Shown: one piece after another, positions 6,823 through 55,658 of the stretch
How positions within the stretch are numbered: the stretch's first letter is position 1
How the letters are laid out: every line of letters begins with the position of its first letter
Virus record (IMG/VR): IMGVR_UViG_3300005537_000001
Location: 62,001 to 126,000 of that record
Length of the DNA stretch: 64,000 nt
Reading direction: 5' to 3' (one strand)
The notes under the pieces: model-generated
Database searches by the model: none
What the model was told of the DNA's origin: nothing
The model's input: only the letters and a program-made list of their open reading frames with translations
Made by a program: the position numbers and the translations under genes

Positions 6823-7947
6823 ATGAAAACGTATCTCGTAGGTGGAGCTGTTCGCGACCAGCTGATGGGTAAAGATGTTAGCGACCTCGATTGGGTAGTG
6901 GTTGGAGCTACCCACGATGAAATGATCGTCAGCGGATACGAGCGCGTTGGTGCTGATTTTCCCGTCTACCTTCACCCCGAAACTAAGGATGAGTATGCTC
7001 TGGCTCGCACGGAGCGAAAGAGCGGTAAGGGATATCTCGGCTTTGAGGTTAAATTCGGTACGGATGTTACCATCGAACAGGATTTGGAACGTCGCGATCT
7101 CACCATCAATTCAATCGCCATGGAGCGAGGTAGCGAGGGTTGGTATTTCACCGACCCATTCAACGGTCGCGCTGACATTCAGAATAAGGTGCTGCGCCAT
7201 ACGAGTCCAGCATTTTCTGAAGATCCGCTGCGCGTTATTCGTCTCGCGCGCTTTTACGCGCGCTTTGAGGATTTTACGATAGCTCCGGAAACAGTAGAGC
7301 TTGCATCTAAGCTTGTTGATTCAGGTGAGCTCGAGCACCTATCACGTGAGCGCTTTTGGGCTGAAATGGAAAAGACGCTCGATCAGACGGCGCGGCTTGA
7401 TAGATTCTTTAGCGCGCTTGATATCTTTGGAGTTATGGATAAGGTATCGTTCTTCAAGGACGTGTTTGGCACTCCATGGTGTCAGCGCCAAACATTCTTG
7501 ATTCCAGCTATCGCGGCAAACCTTGATAATTTCTACATCCCGCTGACTTTACAGCTTGATGCGTTCGTGGCTCTTATCGCAAGCGACAATGCCGAGCAAA
7601 AATCGCAAGTAATTCCGCTAAAGGCGAAAAAGCTTACAAGCGCCATTCGAGCAATTCGAAGTGGAGTAGCTGGACGATCCCTTGCCGAAAATATTTTAGG
7701 ATTCTTGAAAAGTCAACGGGCATTTACCGCTGGTAGCGGCATGGATGATATCATCAACACTATGCGACTTGGTGAACATGTTGGAATTGACTTTCCGATT
7801 AGCTCTTTACAGCTTAGTCGCGCGTTCCACTACGCGTCAGCTATTACTGGTGTCAACTATCAGCACCTGAGCGGACCAGCTGTTGGTAGAGCCATCGACG
7901 CTGATCGACTTGAAGCTATTGACGTGTCGCTTCGCGATCAATCATGA
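6823..7947 (+). CDS. cca: class II tRNA nucleotidyltransferase (CCA-adding enzyme)
   Basis: VGGAVRD, DLD, ARTERK, RRDLTIN, EDPLRV.R.ARF. Confidence 0.92.
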
Positions 7948-28267: not shown

Positions 28268-28623
28268 GAAAACAGCGTAAACGTAGATTGCGAAAATTGG
28301 TGACACCCGGGTTCGAATCCCGGCATCTCCACCAAAAGCATCTTCTTTTGGGGCAGACCTTTGAGGAGTCGAGGTAGCAACGTAAACCCTCCAGTAAATG
28401 TTGCATTGAGGATGCTTTTGATGGGGATGATACATGGCATTCGACCATCAGTGAATAACCTTCTATGCGCTCGATAGGCGTTCGCCGTAAGCGAAGCAAA
28501 TCCAATAAAAGCTAATGATGCTTTTTTCGGGGAAGAACTACGCCTAGCGGCCTAGTCCCTGCGGGGCTTAAACCACCCTGTAACCTAACGGTTAGGGAGG
28601 AGATCAGACAAGGGTCTCCTCCC
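28268..28623 (+). ncRNA. ssrA: circularly permuted two-piece tmRNA, tag ANDAFFGEELRLAA
   Basis: T-arm and CATCTCC-ACCA at 28306-28334 precede GGGGATG at 28423; G3:U70 pair; tag 28511-28555. Confidence 0.9.
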
Positions 28624-29944: not shown

Positions 29945-30240
29945 TATGCAGTCAATCATCCTCATAATACTCGGTGGAATTGGTTTAGGCCTATCCTTGG
30001 AAGTTCCTCACCGTGAGAACTTTACACCTGACCACGCGGTTGGTGCCGGCGTCTGCGGAATTTTGTGGGTTATGCTCTGCTTCGCGCTAGCGATGAGGCT
30101 AACGTTTGCCGCGTAATCTACATAAATGAAGATCACGGTTACGCAGGTTAAGAGAAAGTTTACTTTTTGGGGATTCTGTATATAACTATATCAAATCAAC
30201 TAAACGCTAGTTGATCACTTCTAACCAACGTGGAGCACGT

Positions 30241-31359
30241 ATGGACAAAAAGAAAGAAATTACCGTATTCATCGGTCGATTTTCCCCATTTCACAATGGT
30301 CACGCTGAAGTGCTCAAGCGGGCGCTGGAAACCTCACAAGTAGTTCTCGTGCTGGTTGGCAGCTCTGGGCAGGCACGGACCACCAAAAATCCCTTCACCT
30401 TCGAAGAACGCCGTCAGATGATTACCGACTACGTTCGATACCTAGGCGCGATATGGCGCCCTGGTCAGGGAGGTGAGCTAATTGTCGAACCAATCTACGA
30501 TCATCCCTACAACGACAACAAGTGGATTGAAGGCGTCCAAGCCGTTGTCAACAGGGTAAAGGCAGAAAATACCAGCCTTCGTGGACTGTCAAACTGGTAC
30601 AATTATCTTACCGGCTCAGATCGCGACGCAACTACCTGGTATCTCAACGCCTTCGGTGATTTCTTCGAGAAGGACCTTATCACCAACCATTCAGCTGGAT
30701 TAGACTTAAGCGCGACAAAGATTCGTGACATTCTATTCAACACGGAAACGCTGGTTGAGCTTGAAGTCAAGCTGAATAAGCTTGTACCGTCATCGACTCT
30801 CAGCCACCTGATCGCGTTCGTGGATCATCACCCAGCATATTCGGAGCTGGCGAAGGAATACCTGTACATTGAAAGGTACAAGGAGAGCTACAAGCTGGCT
30901 CCCTATCCGGTAAGCATTCAAACCGTCGACGCGTGCGTGATTCAATCCGGACACGTGCTTGTCTGCGTTCGCGACAACTTCCCCGGCAAGGGGCTTTGGT
31001 GCCTGCCGGGTGGACATCTTGACATTGATCTCGGAGAACGCCTCCTTGACGCGGCCATCCGTGAGCTCACGGAGGAAACTCGAATCGAGCTTTCAAAAGC
31101 GCAGCTTTATGGCTCCGTGCGTGACAAGGAGGTGTTCGATCATCCCGGCCGCAGCCTCAAGGGTCGAGTTATAACGATGGCCTACCTCTTGAAGCTGGAC
31201 GATACGAAACCCCTACCGAAGGTGAAACCTCAGAAGGGAGAGGTTAAGAAGGTAATGTGGTTGCCGATCGCCGAAGCGCTGTCGAGCAAGAACATGGACA
31301 AGTGGTTCGACGATCACTATTCGATTTTGGAAACCCTATACGGGCGGATTAAAAACTGA
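30241..31359 (+). CDS. nadM: bifunctional NMN adenylyltransferase/Nudix ADP-ribose pyrophosphatase
   Basis: GRFSPFHNGH; Nudix box GG...GE....AA.REL.EET. Confidence 0.92.
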   Translation: MDKKKEITVFIGRFSPFHNGHAEVLKRALETSQVVLVLVGSSGQARTTKNPFTFEERRQMITDYVRYLGAIWRPGQGGELIVEPIYDHPYNDNKWIEGVQAVVNRVKAENTSLRGLSNWYNYLTGSDRDATTWYLNAFGDFFEKDLITNHSAGLDLSATKIRDILFNTETLVELEVKLNKLVPSSTLSHLIAFVDHHPAYSELAKEYLYIERYKESYKLAPYPVSIQTVDACVIQSGHVLVCVRDNFPGKGLWCLPGGHLDIDLGERLLDAAIRELTEETRIELSKAQLYGSVRDKEVFDHPGRSLKGRVITMAYLLKLDDTKPLPKVKPQKGEVKKVMWLPIAEALSSKNMDKWFDDHYSILETLYGRIKN

Positions 31360-31398: not shown

Positions 31399-32889
31399 AT
31401 GGCAGCAAAAAGAAAAGAATTTACGGTCGAGCAATACCTCTCTCCTTCCAAGAAGGATATTGAGTATATGCAGCCGGATCAGTTGAAAATCAGCTTGATC
31501 TGCCGCATGGACAGCTACAAGTTTGCGCACCCCTTCGCTTACCGTAAGGGAATTCAGGCGATGAGCGCCCACATGCTGGCGCGAGTCAAGAGCCACGTTA
31601 CGATCATTCCAGCCGGAATGCAACTGCTGACCAAGAAGTATCTAACGCAGCGCATCACGATGGCCGACGTGGACGCCGCAGAGCAATTTGCGATTGGTCA
31701 CTTTGGCCGCAAGCTCTTCGCTCGCGACAGCTGGGAAGGCGTTGTCAACGAGCATGGCGGAGCCATTCCCATCATCATCCGCGCGGTGCCGGAAGGTACT
31801 CGAATTCGCGGTGGGCAGCCGCTGTATTCAGTAACGGCGTTCGGTGAGCTGTATTACTGGATGTCAACCGCCTTCGAAACGCTCCTGCAGCGCGGTATCT
31901 GGTATCCAACGACCATCGCCACGATGGACTACGATATCAAAAATGATATTCGTATGTTCTACGAAGATACTGGCGCGGACATGGCGATGCTTCCATTCGC
32001 TCTCCACGATTTCGGTGCTCGCGGTGTGACCGCACCCGAACAGGCAGAAATTGGCGGTTTTGCCCACACGATTGGATTCATGGGTTCAGACAACATCGAA
32101 GGAATACTTACCGCAAACTTCTACTACAAGTGCGCGATGTCGGCTTTCTCGGTCTACGCTACCGAGCACAGCGTTGAGTGCTCCTTCGGGCTGGGTTCTG
32201 AGGATGAGGTTGAGTACATTCGACATCAGCTGCGTCAAGCTCCAGCTGGATCGATAGTTTCGATCGTCATCGACGGTAAGGATACCTACCGAGCAACCGA
32301 AGCGATCTGCACAACGCTTCGAGATGAGGTGATCGCGTGCAAGGCGAAGGTAGTTCTTCGCCCAGACAGCGGTGATATGCAGGAAATCGTTCCTCGCCTG
32401 CTCCGCCGGCTCGATCAAGCGTTTGGGCACGTCGTTAACAAGAAGGGCTTCAAGAAGATCAACTACGTTGGTATCCTGCAGGGAGACGGAGTCGATCACC
32501 TCGCGATTCGCAGCCTGCTTGGCAACATCATGTCGCGTGGATATTCGGCCGACAACGTTATCTTCGGCAGCGGAGGTGCGCTGCTGCAGAAGGTCAACCG
32601 TGACACCTACAAGTTCGCCCAAAAGGCGAGCGCCATGATGGTTGATGGGAAGTGGATTGGATTGGCGAAAGATCCCATCACCGACAAAGGTAAGAAATCG
32701 GAGGAAGGCGTGCTCACCTTGCTTCGCAGTCGAATGACCGGAGAGCTGATGACCGGTCGGTTGGACGATGGTCCATTCGACACCGAGTGGGAAGATGTTC
32801 ACCAGCTTGTCTATCACTGCGGCCGTCTCTTCAACGAGACAACCCTCGATGAGGTTCGCAATCGGGTTGAAGCCCTAGGAAACTACTGA
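31399..32889 (+). CDS. nadV: nicotinamide phosphoribosyltransferase
   Basis: DSYK..H, HDFG.RG, ATEHS, RPDSGD, QGDGV, FGSGG.LLQK..RDT. Confidence 0.93.
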   Translation: MAAKRKEFTVEQYLSPSKKDIEYMQPDQLKISLICRMDSYKFAHPFAYRKGIQAMSAHMLARVKSHVTIIPAGMQLLTKKYLTQRITMADVDAAEQFAIGHFGRKLFARDSWEGVVNEHGGAIPIIIRAVPEGTRIRGGQPLYSVTAFGELYYWMSTAFETLLQRGIWYPTTIATMDYDIKNDIRMFYEDTGADMAMLPFALHDFGARGVTAPEQAEIGGFAHTIGFMGSDNIEGILTANFYYKCAMSAFSVYATEHSVECSFGLGSEDEVEYIRHQLRQAPAGSIVSIVIDGKDTYRATEAICTTLRDEVIACKAKVVLRPDSGDMQEIVPRLLRRLDQAFGHVVNKKGFKKINYVGILQGDGVDHLAIRSLLGNIMSRGYSADNVIFGSGGALLQKVNRDTYKFAQKASAMMVDGKWIGLAKDPITDKGKKSEEGVLTLLRSRMTGELMTGRLDDGPFDTEWEDVHQLVYHCGRLFNETTLDEVRNRVEALGNY

Positions 32890-33966: not shown

Positions 33967-34977
33967 GTGAAGACATACGGCCTAATCGTCGGTAAGTTCT
34001 CCCCGCTTCACCGCGGTCATGAGCACCTCATCAGTGAAGCTGAAAAACAGTGTGATAGCCTGTTGGTTCTGAGCTACTCGAATCCGGAATTTCGCAAGTG
34101 CGAGGCAAAGATTAGAAAAGAATGGTTGCAGGCACGGTTTCCTTCGGTTCGCTGCGTCGTTCTTGACCCGATTAATTTTCCATCGATGCCAGACAACCAA
34201 GCGAGCGACGCTGAACAGCAGGAATTTTTCAGCTGGATAGTCAACGACGTTTTGGAATATCCGGTGACCCACCTGTTCGCTAACGAGCGATGGGCTGAAA
34301 AGTGCGCACTAAACCTTTCGATTGGCGCGGGGCACCATGTAACAGCGGTAGCATTGGATCCACTGCGGGTGAAGAATCCGATCAGCGCGACATCCATCCG
34401 AGAAGCTCCACACCTCAACGCAAATTGGATGTCACCATTCGTTCGCGCGTCATACGTTACGCAGAAGATAGTTCTTCTTGGTGGTGAATCAACGGGTAAA
34501 ACGACTCTCGCGAAAGCCCTTGCTGAAAAATTCGATACCAGCTGGGTACCTGAATATGGCCGTGAGCTGTGGGAAGAAAAGAATGGTGAGCTTGTTTTTA
34601 GCGACATGTTGAGAATCGGTCATGAGCAGAAATTTCGTGAAAAGTATTTCAACATCGGCGCTAATCGCTATCTCTTCTGCGATACCTCTCCTCTTACCAC
34701 GATGGGGTACAGCATGTGGCTGTACGGTAAAGTTGATGACAAGCTCGTGAAGCTGGCTGAAGAACTATACGACGGCGTCATTTTTTGCCAGGCAGATTTT
34801 GCGCACGTGAACGACGGGACGAGAGTTGGGCATGATTTTCGAAGCATGCAGCAAGATTGGTACAAGCACGTCATTCCGAAGATGAAGTGCCCAATCATCT
34901 CGGTGACCGGTACCATTGAGGAACGCGTTCTTACCGTGACCAACTGGCTGAAGACATCCAACCACAATTGGAACTAG
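33967..34977 (+). CDS. nadR: NadR-like NMN adenylyltransferase/ribosylnicotinamide kinase
   Basis: GKFSPLHRGH; GGESTGKT; EYGR; DT. Confidence 0.92.
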   Translation: MKTYGLIVGKFSPLHRGHEHLISEAEKQCDSLLVLSYSNPEFRKCEAKIRKEWLQARFPSVRCVVLDPINFPSMPDNQASDAEQQEFFSWIVNDVLEYPVTHLFANERWAEKCALNLSIGAGHHVTAVALDPLRVKNPISATSIREAPHLNANWMSPFVRASYVTQKIVLLGGESTGKTTLAKALAEKFDTSWVPEYGRELWEEKNGELVFSDMLRIGHEQKFREKYFNIGANRYLFCDTSPLTTMGYSMWLYGKVDDKLVKLAEELYDGVIFCQADFAHVNDGTRVGHDFRSMQQDWYKHVIPKMKCPIISVTGTIEERVLTVTNWLKTSNHNWN

Positions 34978-34985
34978 GAGATAAA

Positions 34986-37194
34986 ATGAAGGCGATGATG
35001 CTCGCTTTACTGTTGATCGGTGCCGCTCAGGCGGATGAGCTTGATGAGGTAGTTGTAACAGCTTCGCGGCAAGGTATCCAGTCGCTCCAGAAGATACCAG
35101 CTTCCATCACGGTAGTTGACCTAAAGGCTGAAGGACGCCTTGGAGCTACCGATCTCAGCGATGTCGCTAATTCGATTCCATCTCTCACCATCGAGCAAGG
35201 TGGACCAGGGTTAAACAAGATTGACATCCGTGGAATTACCGTTGAAAATGCCGACGTTCTCAACAACATCGACAGCAGACCTCTTGTCGCGGTCTACGTT
35301 GACGATACCCCGCTCGCCCTCGACGGCTTCAATCCGGATCTTAAGGTATTTGACCTTGACCGCATCGAGGTGCTGCGCGGTCCTCAGGGCACCCTCTACG
35401 GTGCCAGCTCCATGGCCGGCACGATTCGCTACATCACGAAAAAACCGAATCCCCAGGAATATTCTGGATCCGATGAAATTACGGTTTCAGATACGGTTGG
35501 CGGCGGCGTCAACTACGGCATCAAGGCGAGCGTCAACCTCCCGCTCAGCGCTCAAACGGCGCTGCTACTAAGCGGATACAACGCGCGCAATTCTGGATGG
35601 ATCAACAACATTCAGAATGGTCAGAACGGTGAAAATTGGGATCGGTCAACTCAAGGTCGAGCCGCGCTGCGTTGGACGCCGTCTGACTATTTCACCCTCG
35701 ACGCGAGCGTTCTCTTCGAGGAGCTTAACACCGGTGGAAGCAACTTTTCCTTCTCGGGCTTGGGCAAGAACGAATACGCAAGCTTAACTCCAACTCCAAT
35801 CACCGACAACATGAAGGTGTACAACCTAACCGAAACGATTACCCCGGATTTCGGTACTATCATCTCCTCAACCTCGTACACCACGCGAACTACCGGTTTC
35901 AACGACCAGGGGCAGTACCTTTCGGAGCTGTTCTTCGGAGTAACCGAGCCTACCACCTACGTCAACCAGAACACCCTGTCGCAGTTCTCCCAGGAATTTC
36001 GAGTCGTTTCTCGCCAAGATCAGCGCACGCGCTGGATTGTTGGCACCTTCTTCAATCACCTCAGCCGCGTCAACTACCAAGATGACAGCGGCGTCGGTTT
36101 TGGGCAGTACATTGGCTTCGATCCTCGAACGATCGGTGGATTTACGGCGGACAGCGTTTTCTCTGGAACTCAGGGCGTTAGGGAACGCGATTTTGGCATC
36201 TTTGGTGAGGTTACGTGGGCGCTAACGGATCGCCTCGACTTTACGGCCGGAGCCCGCTACTTCAACTGGCGACAGCGCTTCAACCTGCAGTTTGGTGGAC
36301 CAGGTGGATACGGAGCGTACGATACCGGCAGCAACGTTGTCAACAAGCAGCTCATCGAGGACGTTGGAGCTAAGGCGCAGGGAGTCAACCCGCGCTTCAT
36401 CGTTAGCTACAAGCTTTCCGATGACGCTATCGTCTTCGCCGAGGCGGCTGAAGGATTTCGCTACGGTGGTGCGAACGAGGCGGTACCAAACGCCAACGTT
36501 CCTGGCGCGTGCGGTGGGCAGCTGCAAAGTCAATTTCACCTGACTTCAGCTCCACCGTCCTACGGCCCAGATCACCTGTGGAGCTACTCGCTTGGTGAGA
36601 AGTCGCTCTTCCTTGACGACAAGCTTCGCGTCAACGCGACCATCTTCCTCATCGATTGGAAGAACGTGCAGGAGGCTGCCTACCTCGGTTCTTGCTCGTA
36701 TACGTACACAACCAACGCTGGAACGGTTATTAGCAAGGGCGGAGAGCTGGAAGCGACCTACAAGCTGGCACGCTATCTTACGCTCGGAATTAACGGATCC
36801 TTTACCCATGCCGCGGCAGATGGTGCTCTTCCCAACGTTGGAGCTCAAAGCGGAGATCTTACTCCGTACAGCCCAGAATGGCTTGGAGCCGCAACTGTTG
36901 ATTACAAGCTTGGTTTCAGCCGGTTGAACGTTGAATATTCGTACCACGGTCGAAGCGGAACGCGCTTCGACCCAGCTGATCCCAGCTACGTAGTTCTACC
37001 AGCCTACAAGAATCTCAATCTGGCTGAAACGTTCGAAGTTCGGTAGGACGCAGGTTAGCTTGTTCTCGCGGAACGCGTTGAACAGCTCACAGGTAACGAT
37101 GATCTACCCGGATCTTCTCGGCACTCAGCCTGGAAATCAGGTAGCGTACGCCAGACCCAGAACCATTGGGGTTCGATTCTCACAGCAATTCTAG
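34986..37194 (+). pseudogene. TonB-dependent receptor with +1 frameshift near 37041
   Basis: signal peptide, EVVVTA, plug RIEVLRGPQGTLYG; 50-aa tail ...PRTIGVRFSQQF in next frame 37042-37194. Confidence 0.88.
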
Positions 37195-45787: not shown

Positions 45788-45913
45788 GAGGTAATAGCTC
45801 AATAGTAGAGCATCAGGGAAGTAGAAGAAATAGGAACTACGCTGAAGTACAAAGCGACTATCTAAAGTATTGAAAACCGGAAGACAATGGTGCGATCCCA
45901 TTTTACTTCACCA
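45788..45913 (+). tRNA. tRNA-Phe(GAA)-like gene with 52-nt insert
   Basis: acceptor, D and T arms intact; TTGAAAA loop after insert. Confidence 0.65.
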
Positions 45914-47625: not shown

Positions 47626-47748
47626 GAGGAAGTAGCTCAGTGGCAGAGCAGCCGCCAAACATCGTTTACGATATTTTGTCGAGCAATCGACCGTTGTATA
47701 ATGGTTATCCAAAGCAGCTTGTCGTAGGTTCGAATCCTATCTTCCTCT
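47626..47748 (+). tRNA. tRNA-Trp(CCA)-like gene interrupted by element copy 4 (47661-47709)
   Basis: GAGGAAG/CTTCCTC acceptor; TCCAAA directly after element. Confidence 0.65.
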
Positions 47749-47782
47749 CTTATTCTTTGAATATACGATTGATAAATATCGT

Positions 47783-53952: not shown

Positions 53953-54067
53953 TTCTGACTGTTGACAAGCCGTCGTAACGAGAAGGTGGACCTAGGGACT
54001 TTTACGGCTTTCTACCTAGGGCGTCAACGCATTGGCACTCGAGCGCTAAAATCGTTACAGTCAGATT

Positions 54068-54158: not shown

Positions 54159-54199
54159 CATAAATAGCCCAGTGTTATCACCCCATCTAGGAGAATTTC

Positions 54200-54463
54200 A
54201 TGAGTGACGTAGAACAGACAGTTGAGGCTCCAGCCTCTGGCGACACGGTAGCCGATGGTTTTTTCGCCAGCGTTTACAGCAAGATCGTTGCCGAGGTAAA
54301 AGCCGTTGAGAAGGATGCGCTTGCCGTTGAAGCGAAGGTCAAGGCTTCAATCGAGGCATTCGCGGCCGGCATTTCAGCTAAGCTCCACAGCCTTCACGCT
54401 GAAGCTGCCGTTGTTGCAGCTGACGTTAAGACGGATGTTGCTGAAGTAGAAACGAAGGTCTAA
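54200..54463 (+). CDS. Ala/Val-rich helical protein
   Basis: AGGAG RBS; ATAAATA upstream. Confidence 0.65.
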   Translation: MSDVEQTVEAPASGDTVADGFFASVYSKIVAEVKAVEKDALAVEAKVKASIEAFAAGISAKLHSLHAEAAVVAADVKTDVAEVETKV

Positions 54464-54466
54464 CTT

Positions 54467-54745
54467 TTTCAAAGTCCGACCTATCGCTGGTTGAACAGCT
54501 GAAAGGCACGTGTGGATGCTAGCGTCCACCAACCAGAGGAAGCTCGGGACTGGCACAAGAGACGTGTGGGAGGGAAACCGTTAAACCACCGTGATCGCCA
54601 GCAAGCCAAACAGAACGAGGGAATCTCTTGCTTATTCGTTCGGGTTGGTGCGGCGATGATCTGGATTTAAACCCAGGGAGCACGTTCGTAAGAGCGTAGT
54701 GGAATGATAGGATAAAACAAAATCCCGGCTATTTGGACTTTGAAA
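54467..54745 (+). ncRNA. rnpB: compact RNase P RNA-like gene
   Basis: P1, P2, P3, P5 helices; P4 AGC(T)CGGGA/TCCCGGCT with bulged U; GAGGAA and ACAAAA flanks. Confidence 0.78.
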
Positions 54746-54764
54746 ATTATTTAGGAGAGATGCA

Positions 54765-54968
54765 ATGACACCGCGAGAACGAGTTAAGGCAGCAGAAGAG
54801 CGTCTGAAAGCGCTTGGCGTTAAGGACGTAAAGTTCGCTTGGAACTATGAAGCGGTAGCCAAGAATACACCAGATCAGGTTTTTACCGACGTGGCTGTCG
54901 CGCTTGAGGCATACCTTGACGGTAAGTACACTCCTCTAGCTGAGCTTAACGACCGTCCTGCTGCATGA
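54765..54968 (+). CDS. hypothetical protein
   Basis: AGGAG RBS. Confidence 0.6.
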   Translation: MTPRERVKAAEERLKALGVKDVKFAWNYEAVAKNTPDQVFTDVAVALEAYLDGKYTPLAELNDRPAA

Positions 54969-55118
54969 AAAGCTTGAGGCATCGGCGAGGAGGTGGTAGC
55001 TTCAACCTCAAGGGGAAGCTTACCAAAGCGTGCGCCTGTCGGTGCTGCACGATGATAAACCCTAAATACAAGATAAAGAAAAAGGAAGATCAAAGAGAAC
55101 TTCATCTTGCGCTAAGAG

Positions 55119-55658
55119 GTGTTTAACGTGGAATCAGTACCCTATTCTGTCGGTCGCAGCCAGATTCAAGATGGCGACATCGTATTCATGGCTCACCGTA
55201 AAACGGTTATGTCATTCATAATCAGGCTGTTCACGCGATCAATCTACTCGCACTGCAACATTGCATTTTGGATTGATACGCCAGCTGGAAAGAGGCTGAT
55301 GGCCGTTGAAGCGCAGGGCGGAACGGCGCGTCGAGTCATCAATCTTAGCTGCTATGAAAAGCTTAGCGACATGCACGTCGTATCTCCTCCTAAAGATTGG
55401 AACACCGTGGCACCGGTCGCGCTGGTTGAGCTTGGATTTCAGAAATACAGCTACATCGACGCGATCTACGTTGGGCTGAGAGAATTTCTCCTGCAGTATT
55501 TTGACATCAAGATAGCCGAAAAGCGACTTGGTGAAATCTGTTCTGAATTTGTTGCGCGTATTAATCAAATGCCGGACCAACAGATTAGTCCAGAGCTTTT
55601 GATGCAAGAGCTTAACCGTGAAGGTCATCAAATCAAGCTGATGATTTCACGCCCATAA
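55119..55658 (+). CDS. permuted papain-like amidase (YiiX/YebB, NlpC/P60)
   Basis: GDIVF...YSH...ICSEFV. Confidence 0.75.
   Translation: MFNVESVPYSVGRSQIQDGDIVFMAHRKTVMSFIIRLFTRSIYSHCNIAFWIDTPAGKRLMAVEAQGGTARRVINLSCYEKLSDMHVVSPPKDWNTVAPVALVELGFQKYSYIDAIYVGLREFLLQYFDIKIAEKRLGEICSEFVARINQMPDQQISPELLMQELNREGHQIKLMISRP

Follow-up and report, generated by a model that had tools for sequence, protein, structure and literature searches.

The window analysed here, a 64,000-nucleotide stretch of the 368,054-bp IMG/VR contig IMGVR_UViG_3300005537_000001, contains a 20-kb region of a giant phage genome with at least 26 tRNA genes, all on the + strand. Within this region, a 301-nt gap between two small + strand ORFs (54200-54463 and 54765-54968) encodes a 281-nt structured RNA (54466-54746, +), which resembles a bacterial-type RNase P RNA, the ribozyme that trims tRNA precursors, with a strongly reduced specificity domain (S-domain). 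The + strand folds better than shuffled sequence (MFE z-score -3.6), and G-U pairs conserved across its relatives fix the coding strand as +. Rfam searches at gathering thresholds recovered the tRNAs, a permuted tmRNA and one borderline sRNA from the window, but no RNase P RNA.

The helices P1, P2, P3, P4 and P5 proposed in the original prediction are all present. P1 pairs TTTCAAAGTCCGA with TTGGACTTTGAAA (54467-54479/54733-54745) and extends one pair further on each side, giving strands at 54466-54479 and 54733-54746 with 14 bp, including two G-U pairs, and a 12-nt perfect inverted repeat 257 nt apart. P2 (CCTATCG/TGATAGG, 54480-54486/54705-54711) has 7 bp, as in bacterial RNase P RNAs. P3 spans 54487-54536, with a stem (CTGGTTG/CAACCAG, 54487-54493/54530-54536) enclosing a window-specific branched insert of two small hairpins, its last pair using the first G of GAGGAA. 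The conserved region CR-I (GAGGA) and the P4 5' strand (AGC-U-CGGGA) occupy 54536-54549 and are invariant in 25 members of the family described below. The P4 5' strand, AGC(U)CGGGA at 54541-54549 with its bulged U at 54544, forms a pseudoknot with TCCCGGCT at 54723-54730. CR-V (ACAAAA, compared with ACAGAA in most relatives) precedes the P4 3' strand UCCCGGCU, the two together spanning 54717-54730. P5 pairs CTGGC at 54550-54554 with GCCAG at 54597-54601, is 100% paired and nearly invariant in the family, and encloses exactly 42 nt (54555-54596).

Seven of these 42 nt (CAAGAGA, 54556-54562) form the 5' strand of a P6 pseudoknot, which was missed in the original prediction and which pairs as a perfect 7-nt complement with 54624-54630 in the terminal loop of the P16/P17 arm. 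The S-domain remnant is therefore only about 34 nt (54563-54596), comprising a P7-like helix (54563-54564 and 54566-54569 with 54586-54591), a GAAA-capped hairpin (54572-54579) and a conserved unpaired UGAUC, while P8-P14 and CR-II/III are absent. The P5 3' strand is followed by the 3-nt J5/15 linker CAA (together 54597-54604), in which A54603 is the equivalent of E. coli A248. The P15-L15-P16-P17 arm (54605-54649) contains P15 (GCC(AA)/(UU)GGU), the L15 loop (AAACA at 54608-54612 and GGGUU at 54642-54646) and P16 (54613-54618/54636-54641), with P17 and its loop carrying the P6 3' strand. A variable P18-like region (54650-54697) holds hairpins at 54660-54677 and 54682-54697 (GUAA loop), and CR-IV (AGUGGAAUG) runs into the P2 3' strand (UGAUAGG) at 54698-54711.

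Relatives of this RNA were found in both cultured phage and environmental DNA. BLAST of three family members against 50,697 phage records identified only one, in an unannotated gap inside the tRNA cluster of the cultured T4-like Stenotrophomonas phage DLP_6, which is not mentioned in the genome paper (PMC5349666). Exact-pattern scans of IMG/VR and JGI metagenomes, using motifs shared by the window and DLP_6 sequences, retrieved about 35 distinct members, including the window's own contig and contigs of 277-465 kb, with P1-to-P1 lengths from 192 to about 290 nt. A covariance model of 194 positions, built from the minimal forms, found exactly one copy in the window (54471-54741, 155 bits, E=2e-41) and scored members at 95-210 bits. 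In contrast, two independent gapped patterns found no true member in one genome from each of 185,579 bacterial and archaeal species, the first returning no hits and the second 18 hits that were all chance matches in coding DNA. In this survey the family was found only in phage and metagenome DNA.

The structure is supported by covariation rather than by single-sequence MFE folding, which misfolded P2, P3 and P5 even with the P4 strands blocked. RNAalifold on a plain MAFFT alignment of 25 unique members recovered P1, P2, P3, P5, a P7-like helix, P15 and P16/17, with changes on both sides in 29 of 44 pairs. In the model-based alignment of 24 full-length members, 95.5% of cells formed standard pairs, compared with 24-40% when partners were slid by 1-3 columns, 27 of 44 pairs showed double-sided compensatory changes and the covariation score was 0.51, compared with 0.05-0.08. 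None of 500 shuffles reached the observed values on four of five measures, and one of 500 did so on the count of further pair types. Double-sided changes were found in 6 of 6 modelled P1 pairs, 6 of 6 P2 pairs (99.3% of cells paired), 3 of 5 P15 pairs and 8 of 9 P16/17 pairs, and the basal P3 pairs also covaried (AU12, GC5, GU4, UA3 and CG1 at one pair of columns). The RNAalifold structure of the model contained two spurious short helices, inside CR-I and the P4 3' strand, which showed almost no double-sided change (none in one, a single sequence in the other), as expected for false helices.

Both pseudoknots covary. P4 was 98.4% paired, compared with 22-39% when slid, with GC13/CG11 and GC22/AU2 swaps and the bulged U present in 24 of 24 members. 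P6 occurred in 17 distinct sequence versions across 24 members, and cognate strands formed 7 bp or more in 75% of cases, compared with 15% for non-cognate combinations. Within the S-domain remnant, the P7-like helix (GUGG/CCAC) switches to GUAG/CUAC in 7 members (GC16/AU7) and the stem of the hairpin varies compensatorily. The P18-like region is optional, 11 of 25 members going straight from P15 to CR-IV, and two members have a P19-like hairpin.

Homology to RNase P RNA is shown by permissive Rfam scans of small family loci, which gave full-length hits to models of the RNase P clan (CL00002). DLP_6 matched RNaseP_bact_a (RF00010) with 54.7 bits (E=2e-14, gathering score 100), two other members matched RNaseP_arch with 38.4 bits (E=7.5e-8) and 37.7 bits (E=1.2e-7), and a further member gave a weaker hit to RNaseP-T (RF02357) with 24.9 bits (E=0.094, gathering score 60). 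No member reached a gathering score. The window copy itself gave only a very weak full-length RNaseP_arch alignment in a 501-nt scan (11.6 bits against a gathering score of 84, E=0.38) and nothing in a 1.5-kb scan, and as such permissive scans behaved inconsistently with stretch length, the family evidence was relied on. Alone, the window copy fails the Rfam search suggested as a check of the original prediction, and only the family evidence rescues it. In the type-A alignment of DLP_6, P1-P5, J5/15, P15/L15/P16, CR-IV, CR-V and the 3' strands of P4 and P1 were matched, while about 140 model positions of the S-domain were replaced by about 49 nt.

The catalytic-domain landmarks also match E. 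coli M1 RNA (rnpB, from NC_000913.3) position for position. The P4 region of M1 nt 61-74 (GAGGA, AAG, U, CCGGG) has a geometry identical to that of the window RNA (GAGGA, AGC, U, CGGGA), with GAGGA followed by 3 bp, a bulged U and 5 bp, and CR-V with the P4 3' strand reads ACAGAA, CCCGG, CUU in M1 and ACAAAA, UCCCG, GCU in the window. The window copy differs in CR-V from most members and bacteria, and has an A-U pair where M1 has the terminal G-C of P4. The window sequence GCAAGCCAAACAG, which the original prediction had likened to the J5/15-P15 consensus, matches M1 nt 246-258 (GCAAGGCCAAATA), the segments GCCAG-CAAG-CC-AAACA corresponding to GGAG-CAAG-GCC-AAAUA in M1, and CCAGCAA, which is invariant in 25 members, aligns with M1 GGAGCAAGG. 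The 3' side of L15 and P15 reads GGGUU-GGU in the window and GGGUA-GGCU in M1, with GGGT invariant in the family. CR-IV, for which the general pattern is likely AGNNNNAU, in agreement with the M1 sequence, reads AGUGGAAU in the window and AGAUGAAU in several members. The family consensus of this region is UAGAUrAAUG, and several members carry AGAUGAAUG, identical to M1 nt 328-336. These catalytic and substrate-contacting nucleotides are invariant in a family with 47% mean column identity.

The closest known system is bacterial type A RNase P RNA, with which the phage RNA shares the order and topology of helices from P1 to P7 and from the P5 3' strand to the P1 3' strand, the 7-bp P2, the 3-nt J5/15, the P6 pseudoknot between J5/7 and L17, and the L15 GGGU loop for the tRNA CCA end. 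It differs in lacking P8-P14 and CR-II/CR-III, in its length (190-290 nt, compared with about 380 nt), in its optional P18 and in being phage-encoded within tRNA arrays. The archaeal type T RNase P RNA of Thermoproteaceae (RF02357) is likewise a natural RNA with an intact catalytic domain (C-domain) and most of the S-domain deleted, and was also missed by earlier Rfam models (PMC3579882). However, type T has an archaeal-type C-domain, a 3-bp P2, a P15 shortened by 1 bp and a 2-nt P5/P15 linker, and works with several archaeal proteins, so this resemblance is convergent reduction. The phage RNA resembles bacterial type A, not archaeal, RNase P RNA. Engineered C-domain-only bacterial RNAs such as Eco CP RPR are active alone and with the C5 protein, with P18 dispensable and efficiency dependent on a P6-like pairing (PMC5839562). 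The phage RNAs, which keep P6 and often lack P18, differ from these inefficient laboratory truncations in being natural and evolutionarily maintained, and in keeping a conserved P7 stub, hairpin and UGAU motif that may compensate. GOLLD and ROOL, large structured RNAs often adjacent to tRNA genes in phages and prophages (PMC12286853), have no sequence or structure relationship to this family and no known catalytic core.

The genomic context links the family to tRNA gene arrays. Of 31 family loci, 26 contain tRNA genes, up to 43 in 14 kb, and all but one of these tRNAs lie on the strand of the element. In 10 loci the RNA lies about 5 nt after the CCA of one tRNA and about 11 nt before the next, although in the window it is flanked by ORFs. 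Of 26 window tRNA genes, 22 encode CCA and many have U at -1, the features read by L15 and A248 in bacterial RNase P. The window also encodes a CCA-adding enzyme, a two-piece tmRNA, and DNA ligase and NAD-salvage enzymes typical of large phages. Searches with E. coli RnpA by tblastn found no homologue in the complete DLP_6 genome, the fetched family loci or, at E<=10 and with a motif scan, the window, in agreement with the original prediction, in which no rnpA-like ORF was seen there, although the window covers only 64 kb of the 368-kb contig. No protein gene was consistently adjacent to the element, flanking genes being shared only between two close relatives. Promoter and terminator scans around it were at chance level, and a stop-codon read-through test for recoding was uninformative.

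The best explanation, held with fair but not high confidence in the absence of activity or expression data, is that this RNA is an active RNase P ribozyme of type-A ancestry, which retains the complete catalytic domain (P1-P6, P15-P17, CR-I, CR-IV and CR-V) and has lost nearly the whole S-domain. It is inferred to be transcribed with the phage tRNA cluster, released in many relatives by processing of the tRNAs that abut it, and folded around the P4/P6 pseudoknotted core. It would bind the genomically encoded 3'-RCCA of phage pre-tRNAs through the conserved L15 GGU, and the -1 nucleotide through the A248 equivalent, and cleave 5' leaders by the usual metal-ion mechanism. It most likely acts with host RnpA, as suggested in the original prediction, since the binding surface for this protein (P2-P4, CR-IV/V and P15) is retained and no phage RnpA was found in the sequences searched. 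Its probable role is to add or secure RNase P capacity for the flood of phage tRNA precursors. The special link to atypical tRNAs raised in the original prediction is not needed, as most window tRNAs are canonical CCA-encoding substrates. Against this explanation, C-domain-only constructs are much less efficient than full-length RNA in vitro (PMC5839562), the host presumably already has a full RNase P, and the interruption of some alleles by a homing endonuclease gene indicates that the RNA may be dispensable in some phages.

A less likely alternative is that the RNA is a neo-functionalised RNase P paralogue, as in the RNase MRP scenario, in which loss of the S-domain, which reads the tRNA T-loop, has redirected the ribozyme to phage polycistronic mRNAs, the two-piece tmRNA precursor, intron-bearing or otherwise odd tRNAs, or host RNAs. 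This would agree with the conserved unpaired motifs (GAG, UGAU) of the remnant, with the position of the window copy between ORFs, and with the presence in the window of a permuted tmRNA and two tRNA-like genes with about 51-nt anticodon-loop insertions. However, the elements that recognise ordinary pre-tRNA ends are invariant, linkage is to ordinary tRNA arrays, and C-domain-only and type T enzymes still process pre-tRNAs (PMC5839562, PMC3579882). It is similarly unlikely that the RNA is a catalytically poor or dead decoy, which titrates host RnpA or pre-tRNA away from the host enzyme and so modulates or shuts down host tRNA maturation. Retention of the protein-binding side of the C-domain, loss of the efficiency-enhancing S-domain and the lack of a detected phage RnpA are compatible with this role, but the invariant nucleotides (the bulged U, the CR-I/CR-V adenosines, L15 GGU and A248) are those needed for chemistry and substrate docking rather than protein binding, the P6 pseudoknot that boosts C-domain catalysis is maintained by covariation, and inhibiting RNase P would be self-defeating for a phage whose own tRNAs need it. 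A decaying fragment of host rnpB or a chance look-alike is very improbable, since despite the sub-gathering Rfam scores, the deleted S-domain and the disrupted alleles, about 35 distinct copies occur in unrelated phage and metagenome contigs with an invariant core, compensatory changes maintain the stems and two pseudoknots, permuted versions keep the same helices, and the pattern scans of cellular genomes found no counterpart.

RNase P is regarded as a universal cellular housekeeping enzyme that phages borrow from the host, T4 tRNA precursors having been classic substrates of host RNase P. A phage-encoded RNase P RNA would extend the translation-related functions of large phages (tRNAs, tmRNA, CCA-adding enzyme and synthetases) to tRNA 5' maturation, and would provide a second, independent case of S-domain loss beside archaeal type T, a natural experiment on how little RNA a bacterial-type RNase P needs (the C-domain, P6 and a P7 stub), and small, diverse scaffolds for structural and mechanistic work. 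The family also exposes an annotation blind spot, as no Rfam model calls these genes. Literature searches, including the huge-phage paper, a 2026 jumbo-phage review and the DLP6 paper, found no mention of a phage-encoded RNase P RNA, although coverage was incomplete and prior description cannot be excluded. It is somewhat more likely than not that phages ranging from a T4-like Stenotrophomonas phage to genomes above 400 kb encode a catalytically active ribozyme of this kind, working without an S-domain and matured out of tRNA arrays like a tRNA, which would be the first viral RNase P and, at about 190-280 nt, the smallest natural bacterial-type RNase P RNA.

This reading also includes diversification into permuted and endonuclease-invaded alleles. 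Three metagenome members appear circularly permuted, with the strand directly 5' of GAGGAA pairing with a strand at the far 3' end to form P3, the P2 5' strand lying 3' of the P4 3' strand, P1 replaced by a short loop and the P2-CGC-P3 junction conserved. A scan for more permuted members with GACGGTGAGCAGGTCA returned 58 chance matches and no members. Two alleles from huge-phage contigs are interrupted right after the P4 5' strand by a SegE-type GIY-YIG homing endonuclease ORF, an insertion that replaces the P5 and P6 5' strands.

Three family members recovered from metagenome contigs (L053, at the region L053:1883-1966, and also L050 and L068; contigs Ga0307375_10015405, Ga0265297_10004222 and Ga0075116_10023665) appear to be circularly permuted, with the RNA ends falling in P3, P1 capped by a short loop and the P2 5' strand lying downstream of the P4 3' strand. 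The P2 and P3 strands differ compensatorily between L053 and L050/L068, and a P6-like pairing is kept. In two further members, L055:6921-7201 (-) and L061:1794-1990 (-), the P1-P3 region could not be recognised by eye, although the core is intact and the model aligns full length. These could represent recombinant or degenerate 5' parts, or another rearranged topology.

In two huge-phage contigs (IMGVR_UViG_3300034073_003340 and 3300034072_000973), the RNase P-like gene is split by a 199-aa SegE-type GIY-YIG homing endonuclease ORF (PF19835, 27.2 bits), located at L014:2853-3452 (- strand) and at the same place in the other family locus, L023. The ORF is inserted right after the P4 5' strand, and the P5/P6 5' strands are lost. 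There is no room for a group I intron core.

Permissive Rfam scans gave different RNase P results for the same element depending on the length of the stretch submitted. A 54.7-bit hit was lost in the shorter DLP_6 scan (L001:1380-1800 compared with the whole of L001), whereas an 11.6-bit hit was lost in the longer window scan (window 54350-54850 compared with 54160-55655). This is presumably a filter effect.

The window also encodes a tRNA nucleotidyltransferase (CCA-adding enzyme; phrog_2244, E=6e-92) at 6823-7947 (+), which is a second tRNA-maturation function on the same phage, and a permuted (two-piece) tmRNA gene at 28274-28555 (+) (Rfam RF04321, 75.1 bits), for which ARAGORN predicts the tag ANDAFFGEELRLAA. 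Two tRNA-like genes of about 123 nt are present at 45788-45910 and 47626-47749 (+). The latter is called by ARAGORN in intron mode as tRNA-Trp(cca) with a 51-nt insertion in the anticodon loop, while 45788-45910 is called only by the tRNA model of Rfam; the insertions are too short for a group I intron. A tRNA with a CUA anticodon at 62199-62272 (+), called tRNA-Pyl by ARAGORN, would be a potential amber suppressor; a crude read-through test gave no clear sign of TAG recoding in the window.

Directly upstream of tRNA-Ser (54068), the stretch at 53953-54062 (+) gave a borderline Rfam hit to the Rhizobiales sRNA Atu_At1 (60.1 bits, gathering score 60), which may be a real structured RNA or a false positive. 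A small basic Cys-rich ORF (beginning MKSLRHRRGGGSFNLKGKL) lies about 220 nt downstream of the RNA in the window, at 54965-55126 (+), and immediately downstream of it in the family locus L047, at L047:584-730, with 63% identity. This ORF was not found next to other members, indicating that it is probably only a lineage-specific neighbour. Elsewhere in the window, this phage contig carries a full-length TonB-dependent receptor ORF at 34968-37046 (+), with Plug and beta-barrel domains (E=3e-27 and 4e-17), next to the NAD-salvage genes NMNAT-Nudix at 30211-31359, NAMPT at 31399-32889 and a NadR-like gene at 33967-34977.
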